Part shown: positions 11,650 through 62,921 of the stretch, piece after piece
Layout of the letters: each line of letters starts with the position of its first letter
How positions within the stretch are numbered: position 1 is the stretch's first letter
DNA from: Dendrobates tinctorius
Taxonomy: Eukaryota
NCBI RefSeq assembly: GCF_039654945.1
Contig: NW_027361688.1
Span: forward strand, 12,896,001 to 12,960,000
Length of the DNA: 64,000 nt
Direction: 5' to 3'
Position numbers and translations under genes: made by a program
Notes under the pieces: generated by a model
What the model was told of the DNA's origin: nothing
The model's database searches: none
The model's input: the letters and a program-made list of their open reading frames with translations, nothing else

Positions 11650-12075
11650 TTCGGGGTCCTCTTGGCTGAGTTTCTCCGCTGCGGCCAGGGAGGTGATGAA
11701 GACGGCCGGTTGGCAGTGCACGGTCTTGTTCAGCATCTCGGCCGGGCCCTTGAGGCATACGTCCAGCAGGTCATAACCCAGCACCTTGTGGGCAGCCAGG
11801 AACATGGCCCTGACATTGGGGTACTGCAGGAGTCCGCGGGCCATGCCCACCTGCTGGCTGCCCTGCCCTGGGAACAGGACCACCGTGCTGTCCAATGGTG
11901 ACCTGGCTGGCCGGTGCTCTTCTACGCCTTCCCTGTCCACCTCGGCCTCCGCCAGTAAACTGACAACGTCCTCTTTCTCACTATTAGACGCCCACCTCTG
12001 ACCCTGGGCAGCCTTGTGCCCACTATACAGCAGCCTCCTATAGAGAGACGACCTCAGAAGAGAGGAGCCCCCCAT
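11650..12075 (-). CDS. MCAT: MCAT exon 1 (mitochondrial targeting peptide + FPGQGSQ motif); spliced protein 379 aa
   Basis: ATG at 12075, VVLFPGQGSQ, TVHCQPAVF, GTAGGT donor. Confidence 0.95.
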
Positions 12076-12812: not shown

Positions 12813-12980
12813 NNNNNNNNNNNNNNNNNNNNNNNNNNNNNNNNNNNNNNNNNNNNNNNNNNNNNNNNNNNNNNNNNNNNNNNNNNNNNNNNNNNNNNNN
12901 NNNNNNNNNNNNNNNNNNNNNNNNNNNNNNNNNNNNNNNNNNNNNNNNNNNNNNNNNNNNNNNNNNNNNNNNNNNNNNNN
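12813..12980. other. Assembly gap (N run)
   Basis: N characters. Confidence 1.
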
Positions 12981-21035: not shown

Positions 21036-21510
21036 CTAAAACAATAGGTACTGGCATTCCCTCCATACGTTGCATGACAAGGACTCATGATATCCTATAC
21101 GCAGATGGATATTCTCTACGACTTGGGTCAAGCTCCCCTTGCTCAGTGGAACAGAGTTCATGGCTTGGACGCTTATAGGCTCGGCTAGCATCCTACACCT
21201 CAGACCATGAGTCTGGACAAAGCGAGCATCCACCAGACTGACTCCTGCTCCGCTGTCCACAAGCACCGGTATCACCTCCAGTACCCCGCCAGCCAAGACC
21301 TCTGCTGACATGGTACCTTGGGAGGGCAAAATGTAGGAAATGTATACTCCCTGGTCGCCTCCCTCCAAGCGACCAGGGGAATGCGGCTTCTCAGATGGCA
21401 CAGATAATTTGGCGCGCAATGGGCAAGCCTTCAGGACATGACCAGTCCGCCCACAGAACAAACATGCCGACACCACTCCCCGAACCGTAGGCAGCTCCGA
21501 ATACAAAGGC
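21036..21510 (-). pseudogene. Second zinc knuckle and aspartic protease of the LTR element (frameshifted)
   Basis: CLFCGRTGHVLKAC, LVDSGA; continues in another frame as PIVLGLSWLKRHNPVIDW. Confidence 0.8.
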
Positions 21511-22321
21511 AGGCTCTCATAGAATGGCCAGGCTTCCCACAGGAAAAGCATACCCCCCCCCCCCCCCGACGAGCCGCAGACACCCCCTCTTTTGTATCAA
21601 CAACACCGGGCTGTCTGGGTTCCTCCGTCCGCACTGGTGGGTCCCCCTCCCTAGCGAGGACATCAGGGGGCACTTTTTGTATATGTCTTTCCCTAAGGCG
21701 TCTATCCACCCGGATGGCAAGGGACATGGCGGCCTCCAGCGACCTGGGGGCGGCGTACTGCACCAGAGTATCCTGCAACGTTGGAGACAAACCCTGCACT
21801 AATTGACTCCTAAGTGCAGGATCATTCCACTTGGTGTTAGTGGCCCATCTCCTAAACTCTGAACAGTACTCCTCGGCAACCCGGGCTCCCTGTTTACACC
21901 TGCGGATTCGGGATTCCGCCAGAGCGACGCCATCAGGTTCCCCATACACAAGCGCCAAAGCCGCAGAAAACTCGTCCACGGACTCTAAAGATGGAGAATC
22001 GTCCGGTAGGGAGAAGGCCCAGGATTGGGGATCTCCTTTAAGAAGGGACATAATGATTCCCACCCGTTGCTCTTCACTGCCTGATGAACGAGGGCGCAGC
22101 CTAAAGTATAATTTACAGGCTTGTTGAAACACCAAGAATTGATCTCTCCCTCCAGAAAATCTGTCAGGGAGGGATATCTTGGGTTCTGGCTGAGCCTGTC
22201 TCTGAACCAAGCCCCCAAAGCCCACCAACTGCTGCAGTTGCTGCACCAACTCACCGCGCAGCCCCCTAATCTCATCAGTAAGGGTCTGCAGCATTTGGGA
22301 AAAGGTCTGAACTGGGTCCAT
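21431..22321 (-). CDS. Retrotransposon Gag (capsid + CCHC zinc knuckle)
   Basis: PEPKISLPDRFSG, QGARVAEEYCSEFRR, CFSCGKPGHSMRAC; 296-aa ORF between LTRs. Confidence 0.88.
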   Translation of the reverse strand: MDPVQTFSQMLQTLTDEIRGLRGELVQQLQQLVGFGGLVQRQAQPEPKISLPDRFSGGRDQFLVFQQACKLYFRLRPRSSGSEEQRVGIIMSLLKGDPQSWAFSLPDDSPSLESVDEFSAALALVYGEPDGVALAESRIRRCKQGARVAEEYCSEFRRWATNTKWNDPALRSQLVQGLSPTLQDTLVQYAAPRSLEAAMSLAIRVDRRLRERHIQKVPPDVLAREGDPPVRTEEPRQPGVVDTKEGVSAARRGGGGVCFSCGKPGHSMRACLCIRSCLRFGEWCRHVCSVGGLVMS

Positions 22322-29478: not shown

Positions 29479-29657
29479 ATGCCTTCCTGGGCTCCTGCCA
29501 TCGGTCTCACCGTTTTGCCCCATGTGGGTGGACTACTTGGAGGACTCATTACCCGTAAAGAGGTCAAAACGTGGTATACGACGCTGGCGAAACCGTCATG
29601 GCGCCCTCCTAATTGGATGTTTGCACCAGTGTGGACAACCCTGTATACGTCTATGGG
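29479..29657 (+). CDS. TSPO: Translocator protein TSPO (canonical copy 1), first coding exon
   Basis: MPSWAPAIGLTVLPHVGG...WYTTLAKPSWRPPNWMFAPVWTTLYTSMG; acceptor at 29473-74, GTAAGT donor. Confidence 0.97.
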
Positions 29658-29683
29658 GTAAGTACGATCCCAAAAAAAAATAG

Positions 29684-29951
29684 AAAAATATTCAGGATTG
29701 AGAGTCCTCAGTAGTTGATACCTTTTAATGGCTAACTGAAAAGATGGTAATACATTGCAAGCTTTCGAGACTACTCAGGTCTCTTCATCAGGCTAGCCTG
29801 ATGAAGAGACCTGAGTAGTCTCGAAAGCTTGCAATGTATTACCATCTTTTCAGTTAGCCATTAAAAGGTATCAACTACTGAGGACTCTCAATCCTGAATA
29901 TTTTTCTATCTACTGGCTAACACGGTACAAAGATATACATCTTTCCTGTAT
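29684..29951. mobile_element. Penelope-like non-autonomous insertion forming a perfect 230-bp palindrome with a hammerhead core
   Basis: Arms 29680-29794 / 29795-29909; CTGATGA-a-gagac(ctgagta)gtctc-GAAAGCTT at 29798-29830; 13-bp TSD caaaaaaaaatag. Confidence 0.8.
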
Positions 29952-30538
29952 CAAAAAAAAATAGTAATTCAATGAGGTTTACACCTTGTTTCTGCATCTC
30001 TGTTCATCCCTCATACTTTACACTGCAGTTCTAGATAATGAAAATGTTAATGCGACATTAATGCAGTTACCTAAATGGTTCATTCATTGAATAATAGAAA
30101 GTTGTAGAATTTTCTAAAATACATTTTTCTTCTACTCTTCAATATGAGCTGTCAGTGAACAAAAACACTCTTATAACATCCAGAGACTAAAATCCCACCA
30201 TGATAACGTCCAAGGGACAAAGCTTTTTACTATGCGATTCACCCTATCTTCATAGGAAAGATCCTTTATCAAAAGTTGATCAGTGATCAACACTGATCTG
30301 TACAGAAACCTAGCAATAAGTGTTTAGTTTTCCTGCAGCGCCACCACAGGGGAAATAAGGAATTACACAGTGCCTGTTTAAATCAATGGTTAATATAGGA
30401 CTGGAAGGGTCCTCCAGATTCTAAAAAGCTCTTTGCAACCAGGAGATTAGGATTCTACACATAGGACCCCCTCTGTTACTCAGAATCCCCCCAAATATGA
30501 ATTGGATAAATACCGTATATATTTTCTTTTTTTTTTAG

Positions 30539-30677
30539 TTATGGTTCATACCTGATCTATAAAGAGTTGGGTGGATTCACTGAAGACGCTGTGGTTCCTT
30601 TAGGACTGTATGGGGGACAGCTGGCTCTTAACTGGGCCTGGACCCCAATTTTCTTTGGAGCCCATAAAATTGGTTGG
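30539..30677 (+). CDS. TSPO: TSPO copy 1, second coding exon
   Basis: 139 nt, AG/GT; [46 protein letters not shown]. Confidence 0.97.
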
Positions 30678-30846
30678 GTAAGTGGTACTATATAAGCAGT
30701 GAATCATTATCCCTATGGGGGGCACCAGTATGTATTTACCAGGGTTTTCCCAAAGGCAATTCTTTGCCGATTAAAATATAGAAAGGGGGCACAGCTGTGT
30801 TTTGGTGGAGTCCCCCTTTACTTTTTTTTTTTTTTTTTTTTAACAG

Positions 30847-31017
30847 GGGTTTTTTGAAATCGTCCTTCTCACTGGTACAGTCGTACTTACAACCGCATCT
30901 TGGTATCCGATCAGTAAGACAGCGACCTACCTCATGTTCCCTTACATTGCCTGGCTGTCGTTGGCCTCTACCCTGAACTACGTCATTTGGAGGGACAACA
31001 AGGACAAATCTGAATGA
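30847..31017 (+). CDS. TSPO: TSPO copy 1, last coding exon (protein 162 aa)
   Basis: GFFEIVLLTG...PYIAWLSLASTLNYVIWRDNKDKSE* with intact CRAC LNYxxWR; AATAAA at 31201. Confidence 0.97.
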   Translation, partial: GFFEIVLLTGTVVLTTASWYPISKTATYLMFPYIAWLSLASTLNYVIWRDNKDKSE

Positions 31018-31799
31018 GGAGGATTTAGGCGTCGGAGGTCGATCCGGACAAGATGGAGGATGAAGTTCTATATAGATGGTCACTTTTTAACATCGGACTT
31101 TTCTATTGCCTGCACACCAGCTGAACACTAATAATGTTACAGTGCCAGTGCCGATCCTATCCTTTTAGTGCCTTAATCATGTGCTCATTGCTAAATGCAA
31201 AATAAAGGACATTGAAAATAATGCATGCGTGGCTAAGCTGAACATTTTTCTGTTTCCTAGTATATTTATTTAGCAGTTGGACTTTGAGTTTTATAGATAC
31301 AGAGCTCCAAATGCCCCATAGACATGCAGTATTATGGCGTATGAAGGTAAAATTCTGCCTGTGGCCACCACTAGATGGAGCTCAATGCATACACAAGGCA
31401 GTTATCCAGCTGTATGCAGTGTGCTCCCTCTAGTGGTAGCTGCGGGCAACTGGAATTATATTCATGCCATGTGAATGTAGAGCCCTACGTTTGGTTCATA
31501 TGGTGGGAAAAGCTCTCAGTTCATATGGGTTGTATACGTTAGGTTACCATTGTGCTGGGGTTTTGTTTTTTGATAACTGGGTTGCATGTTTGATATATCC
31601 CTGAACGCCGATACAGTGGTATACATAAAAGGTATAGGTCAGAAAACATTCCAGTCTAATAAAGGATCAGTTGTAGTCTGCACAGAGATTTAAAAGAAAT
31701 GTGTCATGAGAAAATTACAGATTGGTTTTTATGGAAGGTGTAATTTTCAGACTGGATGCTAGGCCTTATCATAGACTGGCATTACCTGTTCTTACAATG

Positions 31800-32340
31800 G
31801 AAGGTAACACCTCTATATAAAATAGACAACATAGGATCCACAATTCCCAGTTGGTGATATCATAGCTCACCTCCTCCTACTCCTGTAGAATGACTGATGC
31901 CACCTTATATACTGGGCGCCACCATTTACTTTAACTGATGTCACAGCTCAACACCTCCTCCTGTATAATGACTGATAACACAGGATCCACCATTCACAAT
32001 AGGTGATGTCACAGCTCACCTCCTCCTCCTCTACAATAACTGATAACACCTCTATATACAGTAGATAATACAGGATCCACCATTCACAGTAGGTGATGTC
32101 ACAGCTCACCTCCTCCTCCTCCTGTAGAATGACTGATACCATCCTATATCCTGGGCTCCACCATTTACTTTAAGTGATGTCACACCTCACCTCCTCCTCC
32201 TGTATAATGACTGATAATGCCTCTATATACAGTAGATAACACAGGATCCACCATTCACAATAGGTGATGTCACAGCTCACCTCCTCCTCCTGTATAATGA
32301 CTGATAACACCTCTATATACAGGAGGTAAAACAGGATCTG
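31800..32340. repeat. ~88-bp satellite array
   Basis: Same family as 1-575. Confidence 0.85.
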
Positions 32341-35469: not shown

Positions 35470-35651
35470 ATGGCGCCCCCCTGGCTTTCCGCTCTTGGGT
35501 TTACCGTTCTTCCATCAGCAGGGAGCGCCATTTCACGGATTGGAATCGAAGAGCAAATGAAAACCTGGTACCCAACACTGCGGAGACCAAGCTGGTGCCC
35601 CCCAAGCTGGGTGTTTCCACCGGTCTGGGTGACTTTGCATACATCAATGGG
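35470..35651 (+). CDS. TSPO-like paralog (copy 2), first coding exon
   Basis: ttcAG acceptor at 35454, Kozak ACCATGG, 182 nt, MAPPWLSALGFTVLPSAG...WYPTLRRPSWCPPSWVFPPVWVTLHTSMG, GTGAGT donor. Confidence 0.93.
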
Positions 35652-38078: not shown

Positions 38079-41000
38079 CCCCTTCACTACCAAGGGTGGT
38101 TTGCACATTAACTACCGGGCCAATTTTTACAATTCTGACCACTGTACCTTTATGAGGTCATAACTCTGGAACGCTTTCATGGATCCCGGTGATTCTGACA
38201 TTGTTTTCTCGTGACATATTGTACTTCATGTTAGTGGTAAAATTGCATTCAAATAACTTGCATTTATTTGTGAAAAAAACGGAAATTTGGCGAAAATTTT
38301 GAAAATTTCGCAATTTTCCAACTTTGAATTTTTATGCCCTTAAATCACAGCGATACGGCACACAAAAAACTTAATACATAACATTTCCCACATGTTTACT
38401 TTACATCAGCACAATTTTGGAACCAAAATTTTTTTTTGTTAGGAAGTTATAAGGGTTAAAAATTGACCAGCGATTTCTCATTTTTGCAACACCATTTTAT
38501 TTTTAGGGACCACTTCACATTTGAAGCCACTTTGAGGGGTCTATATGATAGAAAATACCCAAAAGTGACACCATTCTAAAAACTGCACCCCTTAAGGTGC
38601 TTAAAACCACATTCAAGAAGTTTATTAACCCTTTAGGTGCGTCACAGGAATTTTTTGAATATTAAAAAAAAAAATGAACATTTAACTTTTTTTCACAAAA
38701 AAAATACTTCAGGTTCAATTCTCTTTATTTTACCAAGGGTAACAGGAGAAATTGGACTGCAAAAGTTATTGTGCAATTTGTCCTGAGTACGCTGATACCT
38801 GATATGTGGGGGGGAACCACTGTTTCGGCGCATGGCAGAGCTCAGAATGGAAGGAGCGCTGTTTGACTTTTTCAATGCAAAATTGGCTGGAATTCAGATC
38901 GGACGCCATGTCACGTTTGGCGAGCCCCTGATGTACCTAAACAGTGGAAACCCCCCCAAGTGACCCCATTTTGGAAACTAGACCCCCCAAGGAACTTATC
39001 TAGATATGTGGTGAGAACTTTGAACCCACAAGGGCTTCACAGAAGTTTATAACGTACAGCAGTACAATTAAAAAATCATATTTTTTCCACAAAAATGATC
39101 TTTTCACCCTCAATTTTTATTTTTCCAAGGGTAACAGGACCCTAAAAGTTATTGTGCAATTTGTCCTGAGTACGCTGATACCCCATATGTGGGTGTAAAT
39201 GACTATTTGGGCGCATAGCAGAGCTCGGAAGGGAAGCAGCGCCATTTGACGTTTTTGGCTAGAATTGAGATCGGACACCATGTCGCGTTAGGAAAGCCCC
39301 TGATGTACCAAAACAGTAGAAACCCCCCACAAATGACACCATTTTGGAAACTAGACCCCCCAAGGAACTTATCTAGATGTGTGGTGAGCACTTTGAACCC
39401 CCCAGTGCTTCACTGAAGTTTATAACGTCCGGGCGTGAAAATAAAAAAATCGTATTTTTTCCACAAACATGATCTTTTAGTCCCCATTTTTTTATTTTCC
39501 CAAGGGTAACAGGAGAAATTGGACCCCAAAAGTTGTTGTCCAATTTGTCCTGAGTATGCTGATACCTCATATGTGGGAGAAAACTACTGTATGGGCACAC
39601 GTCGGGGCTCGGAAGGGAAGTAGTGACGTTTTGGAATGCAGACTTTGATGGAATGGTCTGCGGGTGTCATGTTGCGTTTGGAGAGCCCCTGATGTACCTA
39701 AACAGTGGAAACCCCCCACAAGTGACCCCATTTTGGAAACTAGACCCCCTACTGAACTTATCTAGATGTGTGGTGAGCACTTTGAACCCCCCAGTGCTTC
39801 ACAGAAGTTTATAACGCCTGGGCGTGAAAATAAAAAAAACATTTTTTTCCGCAAAATTATATTTTTGCCCCCAATTTTTTATTTTCCTAAGGGTAACAGG
39901 AGAAATTGGACCCCAAAAGTTGTTTTGTAATTTGTCCTGAGTAGGCTGATACCCTACATGTGGGGGTAAAACACTGTTTGGGCACATGGCAGAGCTTGGA
40001 AGGGAAGGAGCACCATTTGACTTTTTCAACGCAGAATTGGCTGGAATTGAGATCAGACGCCATGTTGCCTTTGGAGAGCACCTGATGTGCCCAAACAGTG
40101 GAAACCCCCAATTATAACTCCAACCCTAACCTCAACACACCCCTAACCNNNNNNNNNNNNNNNNNNNNNNNNNNNNNNNNNNNNNNNNNNNNNNNNNNNN
40201 NNNNNNNNNNNNNNNNNNNNNNNNNNNNNNNNNNNNNNNNNNNNNNNNNNNNNNNNNNNNNNNNNNNNNNNNNNNNNNNNNNNNNNNNNNNNNNNNNNNN
40301 NNNNNNNNNNNNNNNNNNNNNNAAATACATTTTCTTTTAGTTTTATTATTTTTCCCTAACTAAGGGGGTGATAACGGGGGGGTTTGATTTACGATTTATG
40401 GCGGTTTTTATGTTTGGCGGCTGTCGCACGCTAAAAGACGCTTTTTATTGTAAAAATAGTTTTTGCATCACCACATATTGTGAGCTATAATTTTTCCGTA
40501 TTTTGACCCACCGAGTCATGTGAGGTCTTATTTTTTGCGGGACGAGTTGACGTTTTTATTGGTACCATTTTCGGGCACGTGACATTTTTTGATTGCTTTT
40601 TATTCCGATTTTTGGGACGCAGAATGAACAAAAACCAGCGTTTCATGAATTTCTTTTGGGGGGTGCGTTTACACCGTTCCGCCTGCAGTAAAATTGATAA
40701 CGCGTTTTTATTCTTCGGGTCAGTACGGTTACAGCGATACCTCATTTAGGTCGTTTTTTTATGTTTTGTCGGTTTTTTGCAATGAAAACAATTTTATATA
40801 AAAAATAATTATTTTTGTATCGCTTTATTCTGCGAGCTATAACTTTTTTATTTTTTTGCGGATGATGCTGTATGGTGGCTCGTTTTTTGCGGGACAAGAT
40901 GACTTTTTCAGCGGTACCATGGATATTTATATGCGTCTTTTTGATCGCGCGTTATTGCACTTTTTGTTCGGTGGTATGATAATAAATCATTATTTTTTGC

Positions 41001-42051: not shown

Positions 42052-43620
42052 AGTAGAATCATAGAATCGTAGAGTTGGAAGGGACCTCCTGGGCCATCTG
42101 GTCCAACCCCCTGCTCAAAGCAGGATTCGCTAAATCATCCCAGTCAGATGTCTGTCCAGCCTCTGTTTGAAGACTTCCATTGAAGGAGAACTCACCACTT
42201 CTCGTGGCAGCCTGTTCCACTCATTGATCACTCTAACTGTCAAAAAGTTTTTTCTAATATCTAATCTGTGTCTCCTCCCATTCAGTTTCATCCCATTGCT
42301 TCTAGTCTTTCCTTGTGCAAATGAGAATAAAGTTGATCCTTCTACAATGTGACAGCCCTTTAGATATTTGTAGACAGCTATTAAGTCTCCTCTCAGTCTT
42401 CTCTTTTGCAAACTAAACATTCCCAAATCCTGCAACCTTTCCTCATAAGACAGGGTTTGCAGACCGGTCACCATTCTGGTCGCTCTTTTCTGAACTTGCT
42501 CCAGTTTGTTGATGTCTTTTTTAAAATGTGGTGCCCAAAACTGGACACAATATTCCAGATGAGGTCTGACCAAAGAGGAGTAGAGGGAAATAATGACTTC
42601 ACGTGATCTAGACTGTATGCTTCTGTTAATACATCCTAGAATTGCATTTGCCTTTTTTGCTGCTGCATCACACTGTTGACTCATATTCAGTCTGTGATCT
42701 ATTAGTATACCCAAGTCTTTTTCACATGTGCTGTCACATAGCCCTATTCCTCCCATTCTATATATGCTTTTTCCATTTTTATTGCCCAGATGTAGTACTT
42801 TGCATTTCTCCCTGTTAAAAACCATTCTGTTAGTTGCTGCCCACTTCTCCAGTTTATTTAAATCTTTTTGAATCCTCTCTCTCTCTTCTCTAGTATTAGC
42901 TATCCCTCCTAGCTTTGTGTCATCAGCAAATTTAATCAGTTTACCCTCAATTCCTTCATCTAAATCGTTGATAAAGATGTTGAACAATACAGGGCCCAGG
43001 ACAGAGCCCTGTGGTACCCCACTTGAGACATTCTTCCAACTGGATGTGCAGCCATTTACAACCACTCTTTGGGTCCGATCACTAAGCCAGTTATGAATCC
43101 ACCTAACAGTTGCCTTGTCCATTCCATACTTAATCATTTTTTCAATAAGGATTGTATGAGAGACTTTGTCAAATGCTTTGCTGAAGTCAAGATATACTAT
43201 ATCTACAGCATTTCCTTGATCCACCCAATCAGTGATACCGTCATAGAAGGAAATTAAGTTAGTCTGACATGACTTATTAGTTACAAACCCATGCTGACTC
43301 TGTTTAATCACTTCATTCTTATCCAGGTATTGACATACATGTTGTTTAATAATTTGTTCAAAGATCTTTCCTGGTATAGAAGTCAGACTCACCGGCCTAT
43401 AGTTACCTGGGTCCACCTTCTTCCCCTTTTTGAAGATAGGAACAACATTTGCTCTTCTCCAGTCTTCTGGCACTTCTCCTGTTCTCCAAGAATTTTCAAA
43501 GATTATAGAGAGGGGTTCAAAAATTTCTTCTGCTATCTCCTTCAGTACTCTGGGGTGTAATTCATCTGGACCTGGAGACTTGAATTCATTTAGGCTAGCT
43601 TAGTGTTTCCTCACTATCTA
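42052..43620 (-). mobile_element. 5'-truncated CR1 LINE with an open RT-domain ORF (42130-43473)
   Basis: PGNYRPVSLTS, LDFSKAFD, GVPQGSVLGP, KFADD motifs; (attctatg)-type 3' tail at ~42052-42073; interrupts the DIRS RT. Confidence 0.95.
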
Positions 43621-44765
43621 AACTAAAGGCCCTCGAAGTACAAATTCAGAGCCTACTATCCAAGGGGGTTTTAGCAGAAGTCCCAGAGGGACAAGAGGGT
43701 AGAGGCTTCTACTCTCCTTTATTTTTAATTTCCAAACCAGACGGTACGTTTAGGACAATTATAAATTTAAGGAAACTTAATACGTTTATAAAAAATAAGT
43801 TTAAAATGGAATCAATCAGATCCACCATAAAACTTCTCTTTCCAATCTGTGTAATGGCGGGGATTGACTTGAAGGATGCTTACTATCATGTTCCTATTCA
43901 TGATAGATACCAAAGGTACCTAAGGGTCGCGGTGGTTTTCGAAGGCAAGATCCGTCATTTTCAGTATACGGCCATGCCTTTCGGCTTCACCAAAGTGATG
44001 GCAGAGGTGATGGCCTATCTTCGTCAGAAAGACACTCTAATCGTGCCTTATCTGGATGACTTCTTAATTATCGGGAACTCGGTCACCCAGTGTACCAGAC
44101 GTGTGGCTGACGCTGTCTCATCTTTGCAGGATCTAGGCTGGATCATCAACTTCCAGAAGTCCAGACTCGTTCCGCGTTCCCTTCAGATGTTCTTAGGATT
44201 CCAGTTAGACTCCACAACCCAGAGATGCCTACTCCCTCAGGTAAAAATTACACTCACAAAAGAGAAGGTGGAGGTAGCCATAAATAGACCACGTATGTCT
44301 CTGAGAGGGGCAATGTCGCTATTGAGGTCGCTCTCTTCCTGTGCCCCGGCAGTCCAGTGGGCCCATTATCACGTCCGCACACTGCAGCATCAGATCCTCC
44401 GAGAGGACAAGCGACATAGTGGTCACCTCGAGAGCAAGATAACCTTGTCACAGGAGGTCTTGGCTTCTCTAGAATGGTGGCTAGATGATAACCATCTGTC
44501 CACAGGAGTCCCATGGGTCATAGTACCATCTTGTATCCTAACCACCATTGCTAGCCCCCACGGCTTGGGAGCCCATATGGGGAATAGCTTTTGTCAAGGA
44601 AGGTGGAATGGAGATGAACTAGGCTACTCATCTAATCTAAAAGAACTGACGGCGGTATATAATGCTCTACACCATTTTCTTCCACAGCTCCAACGGAAGC
44701 ATGTCAGGATCTTATCGGACAACACCACTACAGTGGCCTACATAAACAGACAGGGAGGTACTTGA
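43620..44765 (+). pseudogene. DIRS reverse transcriptase / RNase H
   Basis: GFYSPLFL, IDLKDAYYHVPI, YLDDFLI, SDNTTTVAYINRQGGT; frameshift and premature stop. Confidence 0.9.
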
Positions 44766-45203
44766 TCAGAGACTCTGATGTCTTCTGCGGCAAGAATCTT
44801 AAACTTAGCCGAAAGTTATTTGTTGTCCCTCTCGGCCCTCCATATCAGGGGAGAGAACAACCAGGAGGCAGACTTCTTAAGCCGACACACACTTCGACAA
44901 GGGGAGTGGTGCCTCAATCGCCGAATCTTCAAGGACATAGTAGCTCTATGGGGGCAACCTCAGATGGACCTCTTTGCCACGAAAAAGAACAGACAGATAA
45001 AAGCGTTTGCCTCCCTGTCCCCATCAGATCATCCAGACATATTGGACGCCCTCCAGGCCTCATGGAAGTTCAACCTGGCATATGCCTTCCCTCCGATAAT
45101 TCTCCCACCACAGGTCATTCGGAAGATCAGAGAGGACAAGGCGAGAGTAATTTTGATAGCACCATTCTGGCTCAAGAGACCTTGATTCTCATGGCTACGA
45201 ATT

Positions 45204-46339
45204 ATGTCGGTTACAGATCCGTGGGTTCTCCCTTCGATTCCCAACCTACTCTCCCAAGGCCCTTTTCTCCACCACCCAGGTGGACAGCTTACACTTGACG
45301 GCGTGGAATTTGAAAGGCAGCTACTAAGATCGAGGGGGTTTTCTGAAACACTAATTGCTACGCTCCTACAGAGCAGGAAGCAATCCACTACCCAAATTTA
45401 TACAAAGATATGGAAAAAATTCCTGCAGTTTCATACAGCGCCTCATACCACAGAAGTTCCGATAGTTCCTATCTTGGAATTTCTACAGAAAGGGAAGGAC
45501 TTGGGCCTGGCAGTAAACACGCTGAAAGTCCAAGTGTCTGCATTAGGCGCACTGTACGGCCATAATGTAGCAGGAAATAAGTGGATATCACGATTCATTA
45601 CAGCTTGCGAACGGATAACTCCGGTTCACATACCTGCAATCCCGGCATGGGACTTAAATCTGGTCTTAGACGCTCTTATGGAAGAACCCTTCGAGCCGAT
45701 AGACACGATATCCCTGAAATACTTGTCACTCAAAACGGCCCTCTTAGTGGCACTGACGTCGGCTAGGAGAGTGAGTGATATCCAAGCCTTAGCCATAGAC
45801 CCACCCTTTTTTCAGATATACCAGGATAGGTTAATATTAAAACCAGACCCCTCATACCTGCCTAAGGTATCAACAAGGTTCCATAGATCTCAAGAGATAC
45901 TTCTCCCGACCTTCTTTGGAGACCCCTTCACTCCGGAGGAGTGGAAATTCCACACTTTGGACGTTAGAAGAACTGTCCTAAAATATATTGAGAGGTCCAG
46001 GAGCTGGAGGCAGTGTAGGGCTCTGTTCATATCTTTTCAGGGCTGTAAAAAAGGGTACGGAGTCACGAAGAGCACCTTTCCCGATGGATCAGGGATGCCA
46101 TTCGCTTAGCCTACTCCGCGAAAAATGAAGAGCCTCCGGAGAACATCAGAGCACATTCCTCCAGAGCAGCGGCAACCTCCTGGGCCGAGAGGGGAGACGT
46201 TCCGATTGAAGCCATATGTAAGGCAGCAATTTGGTCAACCCCTTCTACCTTCTATAATCACTATAGACTTGACCTTTCATCAACTTCTGACCTAAGTTTT
46301 GGCAGGACTGTCCTTGGCATGGTGGTCCCACCCAGGTGA
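45204..46339 (+). pseudogene. DIRS tyrosine recombinase (one frameshift near 46080)
   Basis: LVALTSARRVSDIQAL, HTLDVRR, RAHSSRA, FYNHYRLD. Confidence 0.9.
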
Positions 46340-47065
46340 TAGTCTCTGGAATCTCTCCAGTGGGTGCTGTCGTGGCGAAGGGTAAAAAGCCGGATTACTT
46401 ACCGGTAATGCTCTTTTAATGAGTCCACGACAGCACCCGCTCACTACCCTCCCTGCTAAGATATCAATTAGAAAGTGTATCTGCTAAGGATGAATATGTA
46501 AAAATTAGTAAAACAAAGACATTGCCTAACCTTTGGCGGTCCTCCTGGTACTCTGAAATACAAAAGTAAGGCGGACCGCCCCTTTTTATCTTCCTGTAGG
46601 GTTTCCTGTTCTAAGTGGGGCGGATCCGATACCTCCAGTGGGTGCTGTCATGGACTCATTAAAAGAGCATTACCGGTAAGTAATCCGGCTTATCTACTGT
46701 ATATAGAGCTGTTATCAGTCATTGTATAGGATGGGGAGGAGGTGAGCTGTGACATCACCTATTGTGAATGGTGGATCCTGTGTTATCTCCTGTATATATT
46801 GTAAATCTGCATGATATGATAATGAGACTACTGAAAAGTCTTTTGTACAGAACAGGAAGTGTGAGTCTAGTGTGAGGACTAGTGAGAAGATCGCAATGTT
46901 TCGAAATGTTTTTTCTTTATGTATAGTCAAATGACAAAAAATATAACAAATGAAAAAAAAAATCAGACGGGATGATTTATGCTCAGATTGTTCCTTTAAG
47001 AACGAAGACTCGACTTATTTATTTTGAACACTCTTCTTATTTTGATTCTTTTACCTTTTTTTCAG

Positions 47066-47204
47066 ATACGGATCTTATTTGATTTGGAAAGAGTTGGGAG
47101 GATTTACTAAAGACGCAGTGGTGCCTCTTGGGGTATATGGCACGTACCTGGCTCTGAACTGGTCGTGGATTCGAGTTTTTTTGGGCGCCCACAAAATGAA
47201 ACTG
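47066..47204 (+). CDS. TSPO-like copy 2, second coding exon
   Basis: 139 nt, AG/GT; YGSYLIWKELGGFTKDAVVPLGVYGTYLALNWSWIRVFLGAHKMKL. Confidence 0.93.
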
Positions 47205-48444: not shown

Positions 48445-49080
48445 GTACAGAGCATCGCAGCTATGATAGAAAGGAGTCGGGACACCCAGGTCATGACAGC
48501 TATCATAGAAAGGAGTCAGAACGCGCAGAGCATCGCAACTATGATAGAAAGGAGTCTTGACACGCAGAGCATCGCAGCTATGATAGAAAGGAGTCAGGAC
48601 ACGCAGAGCATCACAGCTATGATAGAAAAGAGTCAGGACACGCAGAGCATCGCAGCTATGATAGAAAGGAGTCTTGACACGCAGAGCATCACAGCTATGA
48701 TAAAAAGGATTCAGGACACGCAGAGCATCACAGCTATGATAGAAAAGAGTCAGGACACGCAGAGCATCGCAGCTATGATAGAAAGGAGTCTTGACACGCA
48801 GAGCATCACAGCTATGATAAAAAGGATTCAGGACACGCAGAGCATCACAGCTATGATAGAAAAGAGTCAGGACACGCAGAGCATCGCAGCTATGATAGAA
48901 AGGAGTCAGGACACGCAGAGCATTGCAGCTATGATAGAAAGGAGTCAGGACATGCAGAGCATTGCAGCTATGATAGAAAGGAGTCTTGACACGCAGAGCA
49001 TCGCGGCTATGATAAAAAGGAGTCAGGACACGCAGGGCATCGCAGCTATGAAAGGAGTCAGAACATTCAGGGCATCACAA
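48445..49080. repeat. 39-bp minisatellite (gagcatcgcagctatgatagaaaggagtcaggacacgca)
   Basis: Tandem units; explains ORF 48463..49221. Confidence 0.95.
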
Positions 49081-49267: not shown

Positions 49268-49444
49268 GCGTTTTTCCAAAGTGTTCTGATGACCGGATCC
49301 GCAGCCGCTACGGTTGTCGTCTGGTTCCCCATTAATAGAACAGCCGCCTGCCTGATGTCCCCCACTGTTGCTTGGTTGTCACTGGCCACTGCCTGGAGCT
49401 ATTGGTTTTGGAGGAACAACCTAGACAAGGAAAAACAGAAGTGA
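49268..49444 (+). CDS. TSPO-like copy 2, last coding exon (protein 165 aa)
   Basis: tacAG acceptor; AFFQSVLMTGSAAATVVVWFPINRTAACLMSPTVAWLSLATAWSYWFWRNNLDKEKQK*; AATAAA at 49717. Confidence 0.93.
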   Translation, partial: AFFQSVLMTGSAAATVVVWFPINRTAACLMSPTVAWLSLATAWSYWFWRNNLDKEKQK

Positions 49445-54266: not shown

Positions 54267-55690
54267 GATTGTACAGGAGGAGGAGGAGGTGAGCTGTGAC
54301 ATCACCTACTGTGAATGGTGGATCCTATGTTATCTACTGTATATAGAGGGGTTATCAGTCATTGTATAGGAGGAGGAGGTGAGCTGTGATATCACCTGTT
54401 GTGAATAGTGGATCCTATGTTATCTACTGTATATAGAGGTGTTATCAGTCATTGTATAGGAGGAGGAGGAGGAGGTGAGCTGTGACATCACCTATTGTGA
54501 ATGGTGGATCCTGTGTTGTCTACTGTATATAGAGGTGTTATCAGTCATTGTACAGGAGGAGGAGGAGGAGGTGAGCTGTGACATCACCTATTGTGAATGG
54601 TGAATCCTGTGTTATCTACTGTATATAGAGGTGTTATCAGTCATTGTACAGGAGGAGGAGGTGAGCTGTGACATCACCTATTGTGAATGGTGAATCCTGT
54701 GTTATCTACTGTATATAGAGGTGTTATCAGTCATTGTATAGGAGGAGGAGGAGGTGAGCTGTGATATCACCTGTTGTGAATAGTGGATCCTGTGTTATCT
54801 ACTGTATATAGAGGGGTTATTAGTCATTGAACAGGAGGAGGAGGTGAGCTGTGACATCACCTATTGTGAATGGTGGATCCTGTGTTGGCTACTGTATATA
54901 GAGGTGTTATCAGTCATTGTACAGGAGGAGGAGGAGGTGAGCTGTGACATCACCTATTGTGAATGGTGAATCCTGTGTTATCTACTGTATATAGAGGTGT
55001 TATCAGTCATTGTATAGGAGGAGGAGGAGGAGGTGAGCTGTGACATCACCTATTGTGAATGGTGGATCCTGTGTTATCTACTGTATATAGAGGGGTTATC
55101 AGTCATTGTACAGGAGGAGGTGAGCTGTGACATCACCTATTGTGATTTGGTGGATCCTATGTTATCTACTGTATATAGAGGTGTTATCAGTCATTGTATA
55201 GGAGGAGGTGAGCTGTGACATCACCTACTGTGAATGGTGGATCCTGTGTTATCTACTGCATATAGAGGTGTTATCAGTCATTGTATAGGAGGAGGAGGTG
55301 AGCTGTGACATCACCTATTGTGAATGGTGAATCCTGTGTTATATACTGTATACTGAGGTATTATCAGTCATTGTACAGGAGGAGGAGGTGAGCTGTGACA
55401 TCACCTATTGTGAATGTTGGATCCTATGTTATCTACTGTATATAGAGGTGTTATCAGTCATTGCACAGGAGGGGGAGGAGGTGAGCTGTGACATCACCTA
55501 TTGTGAATGGTGGATCCTGTGTTATCTACTGTATATAGAGGTGTTATCAGTCATTGTACAGGAGGGGGAGGAGGTGAGCTGTGACATCACCTATTGTGAA
55601 TGGTGGATCCTGTGCTATCTACTGTATATAGAGGTGTTATCAGTCATTGTACAGGAGGGGGAGGAGGTGAGCTGTGACATCACCTATTGT
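54267..55690. repeat. ~88-bp satellite array
   Basis: About 16 units, in the same position relative to the exon as in copy 2. Confidence 0.95.
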
Positions 55691-56094
55691 GCTTTATATA
55701 CTCTATATATAGTTGTAGTCAAAAGTTTTGAGACTGACACAAATTTAGGTTTTTACACTTTGCTGCTTCAGTGTTTTTAGATCTTTAGTCGGATGTTTCT
55801 ACAGTTACTGGGGTACAATTATAAACATTTCAGGCTTTTTTTAAACTTTTATTCACAAATACATTAACGTTTATGGAAAAACTCAATAGTTACATCGTCA
55901 ACCATTTTTTTTTCAGAGTTCGGCTCTTTGCCCCGGCAGCTGGGTATCGGCTTCTGGGGCAAATCCTGACTGATGACCGCCCGTTCTTGTCTCATCAGTG
56001 CTTGGAGGTTTTAACAATTTGTGTTACTTTGTCGTTTTTTGAGAATCAACCACAAGTTCTCTATGGGATTGAGATCTGGGCAGCCTTCTGGTCG

Positions 56095-57506: not shown

Positions 57507-57645
57507 ATACAGCTCTTATTTGATTTGGAAAGAGTTGGGAGGATTTACTAAAGACGCCGTAGTGCCTCTTGGGGTATATTCCACGTACCTAGCGTTGACC
57601 TGGTCATGGAGTCAAGTTTTTTTTGGTGCCCATAAAATTAAGCTG
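57507..57645 (+). CDS. TSPO-like copy 3, second coding exon
   Basis: 139 nt, AG/GT; YSSYLIWKELGGFTKDAVVPLGVYSTYLALTWSWSQVFFGAHKIKL. Confidence 0.93.
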
Positions 57646-57749: not shown

Positions 57750-59240
57750 TGGTGCTATGATATACAGGAATCCGGACACGCAGAGCATCACAGCTATGAT
57801 AGAAAGGAGTCAGGGCGCACACAGCATCACAGCTATGATAGTAAGGAGTCATTACACGCAGAGCATTGCAGGTGTAATAGAAAGGAGCCAGCACATGCAA
57901 AGCATCGCAGCTATGATAGAAAGGAGTCAGGACACGCAGAGCATCACAGCTATGATAGAAAGGAGTCAGGGCGCACACAGCATCGCAGCTATGATAGAAA
58001 GGAGTCAGGACACAGAGCATCACAGCTATGATAGAAAGGAGTCAGAACACACAGTGCACCACAGCTATGATAGAAAGGATTCAGGATACCCAGGGAATCA
58101 CAGCGATGAGAGAAAAGAGTCAGGACACCTAGGACATCACAGTTATGGGAGAAAGGAGTCAGGACACGCTGAGCATCGCAGCTATGATAGAAAGCAGTCA
58201 GGTTCTACTTGCTGGAGCGTATTCATGTTTTTTGGTAATTATATCATACATATGTCTGTGTCATGCAGGATCAGGTTTATGTACCACTTGTTATAAGCAC
58301 GGGACCTTGGATGATGTGTTCTTGTCATTGCAGTTTTTAATAGTGTTTTATTATGCATGTGTCTTTTTGTGGTCTGTTATTTGAATAAAATTATTGTTAT
58401 ATATTTTTCTCATATCAAGGTGTGTGCTATTCTTATACATTGGTCTTTCCCCTTGTTTTTGTTCATGCTATTTGCACAATGCATTACACAGCACCCTATT
58501 AGCTAATATTACCTTATTGGTAGTGCACATATTACATTTACTGTTTAGAAAGGAGTCAGGACACGCTGAGCATCACAGCTATGATAGAAAAAAGTCAGGA
58601 CACGCTGAGCATCACAGCTATGATAGAAAAGAGTCAGGACACGCAGAGCATTGCAGCTATGATAGAAAGGAGTCAGGACACGCTGAGCATCACAGCTATG
58701 ATAGAAAGGAGTCAGGACACGCAGAGCATCACAGCTATCAGAAAGGAGTCAGGACACGCAGAGCATTGCAGCTATGATAGAAAGGAGTCAGGACACGCTG
58801 AGCATCACAGCTATGATAGAAAGGAGTCAGGACACACAGAGCATTGCAGCTATGATAGAAAGGAGTCAGGACACGCTGAGCATCACAGCTATGATAGAAA
58901 GGAGTCAGGACACGCTGAGCATCGCAGCTATGATAGAAAGGAGTCAGGACACGCTGAGCATCGCAGCTATGATAGAAAGGAGTCAGGACACGCTGAGCAT
59001 CACAGCTATGATAGAAAGGAGTCAGGACACGCTGAGCATCGCAGCTATGATAGAAAGGAGTCAGGACACGCAGAGCATTGCAGCTATGATAGAAAGGAGT
59101 CAGGACACGCTGAGCATTGCAGCTATGATAGAAAGGAGTCAGGACACGCTGAGCATCACAGCTACGATAGAAAGGAGTCAGGACACGCTGAGCATCACAG
59201 CTATCATAGAAAAGAGTCAGGACACGCAGAGCATTGCAGC
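57750..59240. repeat. 39-bp minisatellite in two blocks (57750-58200, 58545-59240)
   Basis: Same unit as 48445-49080. Confidence 0.93.
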
Positions 59241-59423
59241 ATGCTGTGTATCTACAGACTGTTCTTAATGCATTGTGAAGCTTTAGGTGAAATTTATAGT
59301 TTGTCCCACATATGAGTACAAGTCCCAAACACTTTCAAATTGCTGGTTGTAATGTCAGGATTTCCTCAATAGTTTGTGTATGCCATTTTGCGCATCTATA
59401 ATTTTACTGGTTTTTTTCTACAG

Positions 59424-59594
59424 GCATTTTTCCAATCTGTTCTTACGACCGGAATCGCAGCTGCTACAGTTGTCATCTGGTGCCCCATTAACAGAACGGC
59501 CGCCTACCTGATGGCCCCCACTGTTCCTTGGATGATAATAGAAACTGTCTGGAGCTATCGGTATTGGAAGGACAACCTAGACAAGACAAAATAG
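59424..59594 (+). CDS. TSPO-like copy 3, last coding exon (protein 163 aa)
   Basis: ctacAG acceptor; AFFQSVLTTGIAAATVVIWCPINRTAAYLMAPTVPWMIIETVWSYRYWKDNLDKTK*; AATAAA at 59803 and 59887. Confidence 0.93.
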   Translation, partial: AFFQSVLTTGIAAATVVIWCPINRTAAYLMAPTVPWMIIETVWSYRYWKDNLDKTK

Positions 59595-60650
59595 AAGTGA
59601 GGATCAGCGTTCCGCCACAACTTTACTGATAAATGAATCTTGTTGAGTTGCAATGCTCCAGCACAGCTGTTAAGAGTGTACGGAGCTGTAACGTTCCAGG
59701 TCTGTACAATGTGTAGCAAACAGCTGATTACCAGAAGGAACCACCGAACAATCAGCCTCCCACCGATCTGATATTGGTGACCTAACTTAAGGATTGGCCA
59801 TTAATAAAGAAGTCCTGATAACCCCTTTAATGCCTTGAACCCAAATCATGTACCGAAAGCATACACTTTATATCTCCTTTTGCATTAATAAAGAATCGCA
59901 AAGAATAAAACTTCAGTCTTGTTATCGGGGACGTGAGCAGCGCTGGACATCCTCTTCAATGTCTCACGTCTATGGCAAGCATAGAAGCCGGCCATCTTTC
60001 TCTACCCTTAACACCTGTCTATATTACAGCCGGAGGCCGTGAAACGCGTTTCAGAACACTGATAGATGGCCGGCTCCTCTGATGTGAGCCAACCGCCTCG
60101 TAGATACCCTAGCGTAAACCTCAAATCAGGAGCCTTGGCGGTCAGCCTGGATATAAGCAGAAGTAAGCCCCCGTCTCGCTTCTGGCTTAATCGCAGCGAA
60201 AACAAATGGGTCAGGTGACTACAATCAAACTGTCCATCCCTTTTCTAGTCGATAGGCGAGTCTTTGGGCGCTCACACCTTACAGTGTCGGAGAAAAGCCC
60301 GATACAAGTGGGTTCAGGTCACTTATAATGTCATGTTTATGAGGGCCTTTAAAATCAGCGCAGAGGCTGCTGTAAGCACAGGGAGCAATAAGTCTATTTA
60401 GGCTCTCACACCTTATGATGTAGGAGAATAGCCCGATATAAGTAGGTTCAGTTACTTATAATATGTTTATGAAGACCTTTAAAATCGGCGCAGAGGCTAC
60501 TGTAAGCACAGGGAGCAAGACGTCTATTTAGGCCCTCACACCATACGATGTCGGAGAAGGGACAAGTGGATTCAGCCACTTATAATATGTTTACAATGGC
60601 CTTTAAAATCAGCGCAGAGGCTGCTGTAAGCACAGGGAGCCATAAGTCCC

Positions 60651-60880: not shown

Positions 60881-61734
60881 GTCTATTCCATAGACATTTC
60901 TGCGAAAACTAGGTGACCATCTGCCCGCCATTACAGCACTATAAGTGAGAGGACTGCCTACCTGGATTTCTAAATGGCAAGCCTACCCATCTGTCTCTAT
61001 CGAAGCCAAAGCAGAAATCACAGCTACTCGGTATATCCTACACAGAAATACCCTGACGAATGAGGAAGACTCGACGATACGTAGTGTAAGGGTATGTGCA
61101 CACGTATGCAGAAAATTCCTGACAGAAAACCGGACTCCTTCCCAGAAAACGTGCGTTTTTTATGCATTTTTTTCCGGAGCGTCTCCAGTCTCATAGAAAA
61201 TAGTTAGAAATGCGGATTTTTCCGCGAAATTAATGAGCATGCTGCGTTTTCAATATGCACAAAAAGTGCAGAATTCATTAAAATGAATGGGATGCTTCTT
61301 GTAAGCGTTTTTGCCCTAAGAAACAACAAACCACCAATGAGTGAAATAGACGTGACCTTTATTTTTCTGGAACATAAAAAAAGTAACAAGCATGTGTAAA
61401 TCTGAGAAGTGGAGTGCGGTAGATTGCTTACACCACGAGTATTCTGCGTTCTGAACCCATGGACATGCCACCGAGAACTCTCCGGGTTAATACAACTGCC
61501 CGGTGCTAAATAACAGCTGAAAAATATGCAACGTATCAAAGGGTAGCGAGAAAACAGTAGAAATGTCAGCAAAGACCTCATCTCACATAGATATTTTATT
61601 TTAGCAACGTCTCCTCGTTTTCGGTAAAGCCTAAAGTGATGGCAGATGAAAAAAAAAAATGAACCTTAACATGAGATTAGAAAAAAATGCCAATTTCTTG
61701 CAGAAAAACAATGCCACTCTTGTCTAATGTTGTG

Positions 61735-62077
61735 TTAAAAGGGTATTTCAATCTCCGAGATCCTATCCCAATATTTAGTAGCTGTAACAATAGCAAATAC
61801 CTCCAAATAGAAATGTAGCATAGTTCTCCTGATTAGCTATGTCACTTACCTCATGTGCAGGGCATTGCAGTAGCTTAGGGATCCATGGTTATAGTGAGTT
61901 TGTTGTTAACGGTCATAACCATGGATACGTGAGCTACTGCAATGCCCTGCACATGGGATAAGCGACATAGCTAATCAGGAGAACTATACCGCATTTCTAA
62001 TTGGAAGTATTTACTAATATTATTATGATACCTACTACATACTGGGATAGGATCTTGGAGATGAGAATACCTCTAAG
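61735..62077. mobile_element. Palindromic TTAA-AGG (T2/Kolobok-type) MITE
   Basis: ttaaaagggtattt...aatacctctaa with long internal inverted arms. Confidence 0.7.
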
Positions 62078-62307
62078 TATTGCAGCATGCAAGAGAATGG
62101 AGCTCACCCGCAATACCAGACCCGGCCCATAGGCAGGAGTGGCGCCGTTCCAAGAAATAAAGCAGAACATTTATCTGATCCTGGACAACCCCTTCAAAAG
62201 CAGCAATATCAGATTCTTCTGAGCCATGTAGTGGTCTACATCGCTGTGCCTTCTAGATGGCTGTTGTTGGTTGTATCAAGTCCAGGAAGATTAATTTCCC
62301 AGCAGAA

Positions 62308-62459
62308 TTAAAGGATGGCGGTCATGTGGCAATTGTCAGTTTCATCCAAGAACAGAGTGCTGAAGACGTCATTGAAAAAAGTCGGATGGTACTTGCAAGC
62401 CCTGGCGCAATCGGGGTTAAAGTTGACTTCTAGAATTTGGGGACGCATGATCCGTTTAC
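62308..62459 (-). CDS. TTLL12: Tubulin tyrosine ligase-like 12, last coding exon
   Basis: Polypyrimidine + AG; (G)KRIMRPQILEVNFNPDCARACKYHPTFFNDVFSTLFLDETDNCHMTAIL*, matching the TTLL12 C-terminus; syntenic with TSPO. Confidence 0.93.
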
Positions 62460-62921
62460 CTGGAAGGAGAGAGGAAAAAAAAAAAAAAAAAAGAAGGGGG
62501 TTTGAGATCAATCTGAGCTCAAATTGAGAAGAACAGTAGTCGTCTTTTCAGTTCATCCATTATATTTCAGTTTTTATAGCTATTTTCTGCTTGGCGTACA
62601 CAGCTCTCAGGTAGAACTGTGTGTCTCCATGGTTGCAGACTACAAACAAATCCAGCGTAGTCAGGTGCTTCTAATTGATCTCCATTATTTTTCTTCCCCC
62701 CCAGCCCTTTGGTTAGCATATGGGCTTGATAAATTGGACATTTACAGACATGACCATTTTTTTTTATTTTTTTTTATATATTATTTCTTTAAAAAATCAC
62801 CCTTTTCCTAATTCAAACATTATCCATATAGATTTTTATTATTTAAATTATAAAAACTTTAGATTTATTAATATATTTTTCCATTTTATATATATCTAAG
62901 TATTTTCCTAGTGTCTCACAT

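Follow-up and report, generated by a model that had tools for sequence, protein, structure and literature searches.

In a 64-kb stretch of the Dendrobates tinctorius genome (64,000 nucleotides of contig NW_027361688.1, hereafter the window), we describe three tandem genes of the family of TSPO (18-kDa translocator protein), which binds drugs and cholesterol, and in particular the third of them, copy 3, which encodes glutamate at residue 147 in transmembrane helix 5. On balance, and with moderate confidence, we regard copy 3 as a working TSPO-like membrane protein belonging to a paralogue that lost most of its constraint in dendrobatoid frogs, and the helix-5 differences between it and the adjacent copy 2 as acquired stepwise on both lineages. 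Glu147 itself is genuine and fixed, and it is transcribed.

A six-frame scan of the whole genome (6.36 Gb, 830 contigs) with a TspO/MBR profile gave nine exon matches, all of them on the forward strand of the window; the same scan gave no convincing match outside it. The nine matches make up three genes of three coding exons each, with all frames open and all introns GT-AG, in agreement with the preliminary description of this DNA, which had proposed three intact tandem TSPO genes. The features used below are the following:

29479 to 31017, + strand: copy 1, canonical TSPO; exons 29479-29657, 30539-30677 and 30847-31017; 162 amino acids
35470 to 49444, + strand: copy 2, TSPO-like paralogue with Ala147 and Trp150; exons 35470-35651, 47066-47204 and 49268-49444; 165 amino acids
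54017 to 59594, + strand: copy 3, TSPO-like with Glu147; three coding exons; 163 amino acids
54017 to 54198, + strand: first coding exon of copy 3, from Met1 to the first two bases of Gly61, with a GT donor; the XP_073423813.1 peptide maps here
57507 to 57645, + strand: middle coding exon of copy 3, 139 nucleotides, between AG and GT
59424 to 59594, + strand: last coding exon of copy 3, codons 108-163 plus the TAG stop; transcript contigs start precisely at its acceptor
59595 to 59910, + strand: 3' untranslated region (UTR) of copy 3; transcript contigs end at 59897-59910
59526 to 59573, + strand: codons 142-157 of copy 3, in the N-terminal two thirds of transmembrane helix 5 by translation, codon alignment and the helix 140-157 of an AlphaFold2 (AF2) model, at a predicted local distance difference test (pLDDT) of 93-98
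59541 to 59543, + strand: codon 147 (gaa, Glu), on A147 of mouse/human TSPO by ungapped alignment to 2MGY/2N02

The copy 3 protein is identical to the RefSeq entry 'translocator protein-like' of D. tinctorius, XP_073423813.1 (P0090). The copy 2 protein is identical to RefSeq isoform X1 (P0162), which maps exactly onto the copy 2 exons.

Glu147 and the helix-5 differences

Over residues 142-157, copy 3 reads PWMIIETVWSYRYWKD, copy 2 AWLSLATAWSYWFWRN and copy 1 AWLSLASTLNYVIWRD. Between copies 3 and 2, 10 of these 16 residues are changed and the six codons in common carry no silent change, as against 9 synonymous and 7 replaced codons in the middle exon of the same two genes. Codon alignment reproduced all of these counts, which had been given in the preliminary description, together with the stretch itself. 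Copy 3 aligns without gaps to mouse TSPO (2MGY) and its A147T variant (2N02), residues 3-159 on residues 3-159. Glu147 is therefore placed exactly on A147/T147, and the earlier equation of codon 147 with the site of the human A147T polymorphism was borne out.

The bases were compared with contig sets of four public sequencing runs over 59241-60400, the junction of exons 1 and 2 being that of the RefSeq model alone. Three runs of the same organism, from three studies, each gave one contig identical to the window over 59423-59897/59910. All four transcript contigs start at the acceptor of the last exon (59423/59424) and run upstream into 30 bases of the middle-exon end of copy 3, not that of copy 2; they therefore represent spliced mRNAs, which end about 300 bases past the stop codon. 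The fourth run, from a related organism, shows the same splice junction and 15 differences in 382 bases. In the coding part of exon 3, these amount to three silent changes and two replacements (I125V and Y135C), and none lies between 59507 and 59607, so that the helix-5 stretch including Glu147 is identical in the related organism. Codon 147 showed no variant in the contigs of the four runs. The preliminary description had asked for a check against reads and had made its case depend on expression of copy 3. As for the former, contigs of three studies match every base, and an assembly or read error behind the cluster of differences was thereby ruled out; as for the latter, spliced mRNA contigs were found in the three studies and in the related organism.

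The clustering of replacements in helix 5 exceeds chance only marginally. When the 43 residues replaced between copies 2 and 3 were shuffled over 163 positions, some 16-residue window with at least 10 of them appeared with P = 0.076, and with P = 0.22 if window width was scanned too. Fisher's test of replacement versus silent changes in the helix-5 window gave P = 0.01-0.03, uncorrected. Between copies 2 and 3, the replacement distance (dN) in the helix-5 stretch is 0.387, and its ratio to the silent distance dS (omega) is 2.96, a value that comes from 8.3 silent sites and a single silent change. As a neutral yardstick, those intron and upstream flanks that can be aligned between the two copies have a distance K of 0.38-0.46, and dS over the whole gene is 0.34. 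Since the neutral distance is about the same as the dN of the helix-5 stretch, helix 5 changed at approximately the neutral rate and not above it. With only about eight silent sites and a flank distance equal to the helix-5 dN, the omega of 2.96 was rejected as a sign of selection.

The order of the changes was established in a codon alignment of the three window copies with 12 further frog genes. The inferred ancestral dendrobatoid helix 5 is AWLTLATALSYRFWRD, with GCA at codon 147, and the changes are distributed over the branches as follows:

stem of the copy-3 clade: T145V, L146I, A149V and R156K, also in the Ala147 copy of Ranitomeya variabilis
branch to the Glu147 copies: A142P, A147E (GCA to GAA, one step) and L150W, before the Dendrobates/Ranitomeya split
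after the split from Ranitomeya: L144M, V145I and F154Y, also in the related organism of the fourth run
copy 2 branch: T145S, L150W, R153W and D157N, plus a silent GCA to GCC change at codon 147

With the changes spread in this way, events on four or more branches add up to the ten differences that separate copy 2 from copy 3. A single burst in copy 3, as suggested before, is thus not upheld: the orthologues place changes on three or more consecutive branches of the copy-3 lineage and a further four on that of copy 2. The two-base difference at codon 147 (GCC/GAA) likewise consists of one silent change in copy 2 and one replacement in the copy-3 lineage. Glu147 is kept in the orthologues of R. 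imitator and R. variabilis and in the nearer relative (RNA contigs). The placement of the R. variabilis Ala147 copy outside the Glu147 copies was not rejected, yet is insecure (approximately unbiased (AU) test, p 0.24).

Within the stretch, copies 2 and 3 disagree at 7 bases in a run of 12 (TTGTCACTGGCC vs ATGATAATAGAA), and the minisatellite of the nearby intron includes ATGATAGAAA. Both would fit an assembly error, gene conversion or a templated event that turned TTGTCACTGGCC into ATGATAATAGAA at once. However, the Ranitomeya orthologues show the intermediate states TTG GTA ATA GAA, hence the bases changed singly; the contigs match the assembly, and a second match to the 16-mer within 3 mismatches is not present elsewhere in the window. 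A single templated or converted patch was ruled out by the intermediates and the missing second match, and an artefact or complex mutation of any kind is barely credible.

Six of the nine changes on the copy-3 lineage are like-for-like (L144M, T145V then I, L146I, A149V, F154Y and R156K) and would face lipid; the other three, A142P, A147E and L150W, are radical. The Kyte-Doolittle sum over residues 142-151 runs along this lineage from 13.7 to 21.7 and then to 8.3/6.7, the canonical copy having 8.3. The hydrophobic changes beside residue 147 preceded the glutamate and offset it.

Fold, relatives and constraint of copy 3

Copy 3 matches the Pfam family PF03073 (TspO/MBR) with 132.7 bits (cut-off 24) over profile positions 1-144 of 145. 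The AF2 model (pLDDT 91.7, predicted template modelling score 0.86) predicts five helices at 5-31, 46-70, 76-101, 105-126 and 140-157, which would put Pro142 in the first turn of helix 5 and Glu147 in its middle. In a Foldseek search of the PDB with this model, the best 15 matches were all TSPO, with template modelling (TM) scores up to 0.86. The tryptophan/proline core (W33, P40, P44, W53, W93, W95, W143 and others) is intact, 14 of 14 invariant columns of a 63-sequence alignment being kept. Departures were found at 4 of 35 near-invariant columns (M60V, N92T, L144M and L150W), and Y57N is changed as well. The CRAC (cholesterol recognition amino acid consensus) motif, L/V-X(1-5)-Y-X(1-5)-R/K, is found at the C-terminal end of helix 5. 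In copy 3, V149-W-S-Y152-R153 (also with K156) fits such a motif by sequence, and cholesterol binding is putative.

In the mouse TSPO-PK11195 structure, the ligand contacts A23, V26, L49, A50, I52, W107, A110, L114, A147 and L150, and V26 stands opposite A147 (PMC6470738). Copy 3 lacks the canonical combination of Ala147 and Leu150 at this site and has Glu147 and Trp150, both of which would by homology line the central cavity. At contact position 23, the dendrobatoid TSPO-like genes also have Q or R, and position 111, acidic in other frogs, is occupied in them by Q or H. Glu147 and Trp150, with Q23 and Q111, could render the cavity of copy 3 smaller and more polar. Canonical binding of classical TSPO ligands has probably been lost from copy 3, which keeps the predicted fold, the tryptophan core and the CRAC-type motif.

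Mammalian TSPO (2MGY, 2N02; human rs6971, A147T) resembles copy 3 in fold, length and numbering (43% identity, E 4e-44), and in having three coding exons, the tryptophan core and a CRAC-type motif. Copy 3 differs from it in E147 for Ala/Thr, W150 for Leu, L107 for Trp, Q23, Q111 and MII for LAF at 144-146; it evolves about ten times faster than canonical TSPO (omega 0.5 vs 0.05), and the orthologue of the mammalian gene in the window is copy 1. Rhodobacter sphaeroides TSPO A139T (4UC1/4UC2) has a substitution at the equivalent helix-5 alanine and the copy 3 model superposes on it with TM scores of 0.80-0.82, but this is a laboratory Ala-to-Thr mutant with 22-23% identity. Sequence and fold searches of the PDB, judged by the descriptions of the entries and not chain by chain, gave no structure described with an acidic residue at the equivalent of position 147.

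A search with exon 3 against representative proteins gave no match above 53% identity. A search with an alignment of a fish TSPO and the second and third exons of copies 2 and 3 recovered annotated frog proteins, and other TSPO-like genes were found in R. imitator (one, XP_069619465.1), R. variabilis (two, including XP_077122693.1), Phyllobates terribilis (two), Anomaloglossus baeobatrachus (two), Engystomops pustulosus (one) and Nanorana parkeri (one). The gene order is MCAT-TSPO-TSPO-like-TTLL12 in R. imitator and TSPO-TSPO-like-TTLL12 in Engystomops and Nanorana, and the downstream TSPO-like copy of Anomaloglossus adjoins TTLL12. Two features of the window belong to the same interval:

11608 to 12072, - strand: MCAT-type exon, an open frame with an acyl-transferase domain (Pfam PF00698, 37.6 bits); MCAT is the neighbour that marks the canonical TSPO locus
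61318 to 62689, no strand assigned: DNA 3' of copy 3, colinear with R. imitator (blastn, 86% identity), where the region reaches from the Glu147 copy into the 3' end of TTLL12

Coding sequences taken from the frog loci were made into trees, both with the helix-5 codons and after their removal. The TSPO-like genes group apart from canonical TSPO (support 100/100), with a dendrobatoid clade inside their own (99/98). The latter holds four well-supported groups in no firm branching order. Copy 2 stands by itself, the two Anomaloglossus genes pair up (100/100), as do those of Phyllobates, and copy 3 joins the three Ranitomeya genes (100/99). By synteny, downstream colinearity and tree, copy 3 is a frog TSPO-like paralogue of the TSPO/TTLL12 interval. 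It is not the orthologue of vertebrate TSPO1, as it lies in the separate TSPO-like clade; that role belongs to copy 1, which differs from Ranitomeya TSPO at 1 and 3 residues of 162 (omega 0.02-0.05; exon peptides 96-100% identical).

The dS between copy 3 and the Ranitomeya genes (0.14-0.21) is similar to that of canonical TSPO in the same species (0.15-0.17), which fits orthology. Copy 3 and the Ranitomeya genes share 81-92% identity in most non-coding flanks, with 72% just 5' of the R. imitator start codon. The flanks of copy 2 are 79-91% identical to Phyllobates in four of six cases and 45-81% identical to copy 3; those of the Anomaloglossus pair are 88-97% identical in four of six (introns, 3' UTR). 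From these identities and the dS of 0.34 it follows that copies 2 and 3 are old paralogues, which split at least before Phyllobates left Dendrobates/Ranitomeya, and are not a young pair, the flanks of copy 2 pairing with the Phyllobates genes. Further duplications took place in Anomaloglossus and Phyllobates and inside the copy-3 clade.

The arrays also differ in content. R. imitator has a single TSPO-like gene, with Glu147, adjoining TTLL12, and R. variabilis has one Glu147 and one Ala147 copy; the order in D. tinctorius, Ala copy followed by Glu copy, is reversed in R. variabilis and Anomaloglossus. This variation in copy number and order looks like birth-and-death turnover of the array.

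As for the deeper origin, a quick protein tree placed the frog TSPO-like clade nearest to fish-type and reptile 'TSPO2' sequences (Shimodaira-Hasegawa-like approximate likelihood ratio test 83); in AU tests, neither a grouping with tetrapod TSPO1 (p 0.57) nor one with frog TSPO alone (p 0.40) was rejected. Leu107 and a 'KLA' motif at 105-108 (KIKLA/KLKLA) are common to the frog TSPO-like clade, fish TSPO, reptile 'TSPO2' and the coelacanth and salamander 'TSPO-like' sequences. In the literature, the vertebrate family consists of TSPO1 and TSPO2, the latter being the second gene of birds and mammals (PMC3790746). The frog TSPO-like gene is similar to TSPO2 in being a second, diverged TSPO gene, and reptile 'TSPO2' shares Leu107 and 'KLA' with it; unlike TSPO2, it is placed in tandem at the TSPO1 locus. 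A literature search found no paper on the TSPO-like paralogue family, its acceleration in dendrobatoids or variation at residue 147, the RefSeq entries being automatic annotation.

Codon models were fitted with our own GY94-type likelihood code (F3x4, fixed topology; branch lengths re-optimised in site-class and branch-site fits and held fixed in per-site tests). Under branch models, canonical TSPO has an omega of 0.049, the TSPO-like genes of Nanorana and Engystomops one of 0.094 and those of dendrobatoids one of 0.53, and the dendrobatoid shift is highly significant (twice the log-likelihood difference, 2dlnL, 48.5, p 3e-12). For the nine dendrobatoid genes, model M1a assigns 58% of sites to omega 0.16 and 42% to omega 1, sites 142, 145, 147 and 150 being in the fast class, and M2a brings no gain over M1a (omega2 1.2, 2dlnL 0.33, p 0.85). 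Branch-site tests gave p = 0.11 for the clade stem, 0.45 for the path to copy 3 and 0.085 for the two branches with A147E. In per-site tests, no helix-5 site had omega significantly above 1 (site 147: omega 2.1, p 0.54). Positive selection was thus not supported, site, branch-site and per-site models all being non-significant. The preliminary description would have been contradicted by E147 not being conserved together with dN/dS not above 1 in helix 5; conservation of E147 was confirmed, and an omega significantly above 1 was not found by any codon model. Between copy 3 and its Ranitomeya orthologues, omega is 0.26-0.43 over a dS of 0.14-0.2, and copy 3 is therefore still constrained.

An omega of 0.5, 42% of sites at omega 1 and the departures M60V, N92T, L144M, L150W and Y57N would also be expected if copy 3 were a decaying duplicate, transcribed and functionless, with its buried glutamate as a mark of lost function. 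This appears very improbable, as all nine dendrobatoid TSPO-like genes (five species) are intact, with open frames and GT-AG splice sites, 58% of sites are held at omega 0.16, omega against the orthologues is low, splicing is correct in four runs and the predicted fold is confident. We infer that the shift in constraint reflects a changed and not a lost function. According to the reading preferred here, the dendrobatoid TSPO-like paralogue would have been freed from most of the constraint that holds canonical TSPO and repeatedly duplicated, with about 40% of its sites effectively free, and the ten helix-5 differences would have built up over a long time on both lineages.

Recurrent change at residues 147 and 150

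Several observations weigh against relaxed, stepwise divergence as the full explanation. Among 51 other animal TSPOs, residue 147 is A in 48, S in two and V in one, and residue 150 is L in all 51. These two near-invariant sites have each changed three times independently in the dendrobatoid TSPO-like genes. As for residue 147, A147E arose twice, once in the copy-3 lineage and once in an Anomaloglossus copy, and A147S in one Phyllobates copy. As for residue 150, L150W was gained by the Glu147 copies of the copy-3 lineage, by copy 2 and by the Anomaloglossus copy without Glu147, so that Glu147 and Trp150 are on separate copies in Anomaloglossus. The proteins of the Phyllobates pair differ solely at A147S (GCA to TCA), with three more differences that are silent:

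L015:10001-11952 and L014:10001-17295: the two Phyllobates terribilis TSPO-like genes, separated by about 60 kb and very unequal in intron size

With the helix-5 columns removed, the AU test rejects one origin of Glu147 (p 2.7e-6); this result and the intron identity of the Anomaloglossus pair rule out a single origin across frogs. Large-tract gene conversion may have taken place within Anomaloglossus, 150 bases 5' of exon 3 being unalignable between its copies. Codon models with nine genes have low power, and the recurrence as a whole agrees with directed retuning of the pocket more readily than with drift alone.

The within-species pairs bear on the same question. Sixteen residues differ in the Anomaloglossus pair (including 140, 142, 147, 150 and 151) and 17 in the R. 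variabilis pair (including 140, 142, 147 and 150); both pairs thus differ at 140, 142, 147 and 150, an overlap with P 0.067. Site 147 had been named beforehand, and the chance that the independent Anomaloglossus and Phyllobates pairs would both differ there is P = 6e-4 if rates are uniform and 3.5e-3 if only the 42% free sites can vary. Differences within the three pairs are enriched in residues 142-157 (Fisher combined P 0.036; 0.0004 for the post hoc window 140-151). Since Glu147, Pro142 and Trp150 of R. variabilis are common with copy 3 by descent, the P values of Anomaloglossus and Phyllobates were also combined by hand, giving about 0.03. Among the 56 sites that are at least 90% conserved elsewhere, only 92, 147 and 150 have at least three changes. 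On the other hand, about 1.9 replacements are expected at a free codon on this tree (tree length 2.59), as against three seen at 147, and the pocket residues as a set showed no enrichment for change (P 0.31). Part of the recurrence tests were framed after the data had been seen.

These results could be explained by adaptive retuning, in which one copy was selected after each duplication for new ligand specificity via residues 147 and 150 (with 140/142, where the helix starts), Glu147 serving as a polar or charged contact. Besides the second origin of A147E, the sole Phyllobates difference, the three origins of L150W and the concentration at sites 147 and 150, this would agree with the hydrophobic flank changes that came before E147 and compensate its hydropathy. 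It is opposed by the M2a comparison, by the branch-site test on the A147E branches and the per-site test at 147, by a number of replacements near that expected for a free codon, by the unenriched pocket set and by the post hoc framing of several of the supporting tests. We regard such retuning as possible but rather unlikely, and would give about one chance in four that the helix-5 changes were selected.

A more specific proposal, following the counter-ion suggested in the preliminary description, is that copy 3 binds or handles protonated lipophilic alkaloids, with Glu147 as counter-ion, in toxin sequestration or self-protection. The source is a poison frog and copy 3 is exactly a RefSeq protein of D. 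tinctorius; acceleration and repeated duplication are confined to dendrobatoids among the sampled frogs; and the gene is transcribed, with an acidic residue at a contact site that is never charged in the 51 other TSPOs. However, the same A147E and the same acceleration are present in Anomaloglossus, an aromobatid, and this family is generally without chemical defence. Phyllobates terribilis, the most toxic species in the sample, has A or S at 147. The acidic residue 111 is replaced by Q/H in the same genes, and the net charge of the cavity may therefore stay unchanged. No paper joining TSPO and poison frogs was found in the literature search. The proposal is thus very improbable, and the same applies to its extension to the whole dendrobatoid family, in which ligand-binding proteins would have been retuned at 147 (Ala/Glu/Ser) and 150 (Leu/Trp), the Glu147 forms binding protonated lipophilic amines such as dietary alkaloids for toxin handling or self-protection.

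Surroundings of the genes and meaning of the residue-147 series

A second RefSeq isoform of copy 2, X2 (P0150), has 113 amino acids and an alternative first exon, and helices 1 and 2 would be missing from it; this isoform is the representative of the 90% protein cluster that contains copy 2. Copy 2 further has R97 in helix 3 and W153/N157 in the CRAC region. Much of intron 2 in copies 2 and 3 is taken up by a 39-bp minisatellite with units 80-93% matching (48447-49079, 57754-58202 and 58546-59234). A 90-bp satellite of 15.5 units lies in intron 1 of copy 3 (54268-55691), and single units of it in intron 1 of copy 2 (46690-46798) and 3' of copy 1 (31793-32000, reverse). Retroelement open frames with reverse transcriptase and RNase H occupy 42130-46109 in intron 1 of copy 2, and a gag/zinc-knuckle open frame is located between MCAT and copy 1 (21431-22318). 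Runs of N are present at 12813-12980 (168 bases) and, inside intron 1 of copy 2, at 40149-40322 (174 bases).

What appears to be new here, as read from the genes compared, is the repeated change at contact residues 147 and 150 across independent duplicates of a fast-evolving dendrobatoid TSPO-like family. If this is mere relaxation, it would represent ordinary paralogue drift, and a link to alkaloids is a long shot. In human TSPO, residue 147 governs the binding of positron emission tomography (PET) tracers and drugs. The natural series of paralogues, with Ala, Glu or Ser at 147 (once as the sole difference) and with Leu150 changed, would offer a ready comparison set for the ligand cavity. As the TSPO-like gene is constrained elsewhere (omega about 0.09), fast and duplicated in dendrobatoids (0.53) and broken in none of them, the evidence points to a changed function of this paralogue in dendrobatoid frogs.

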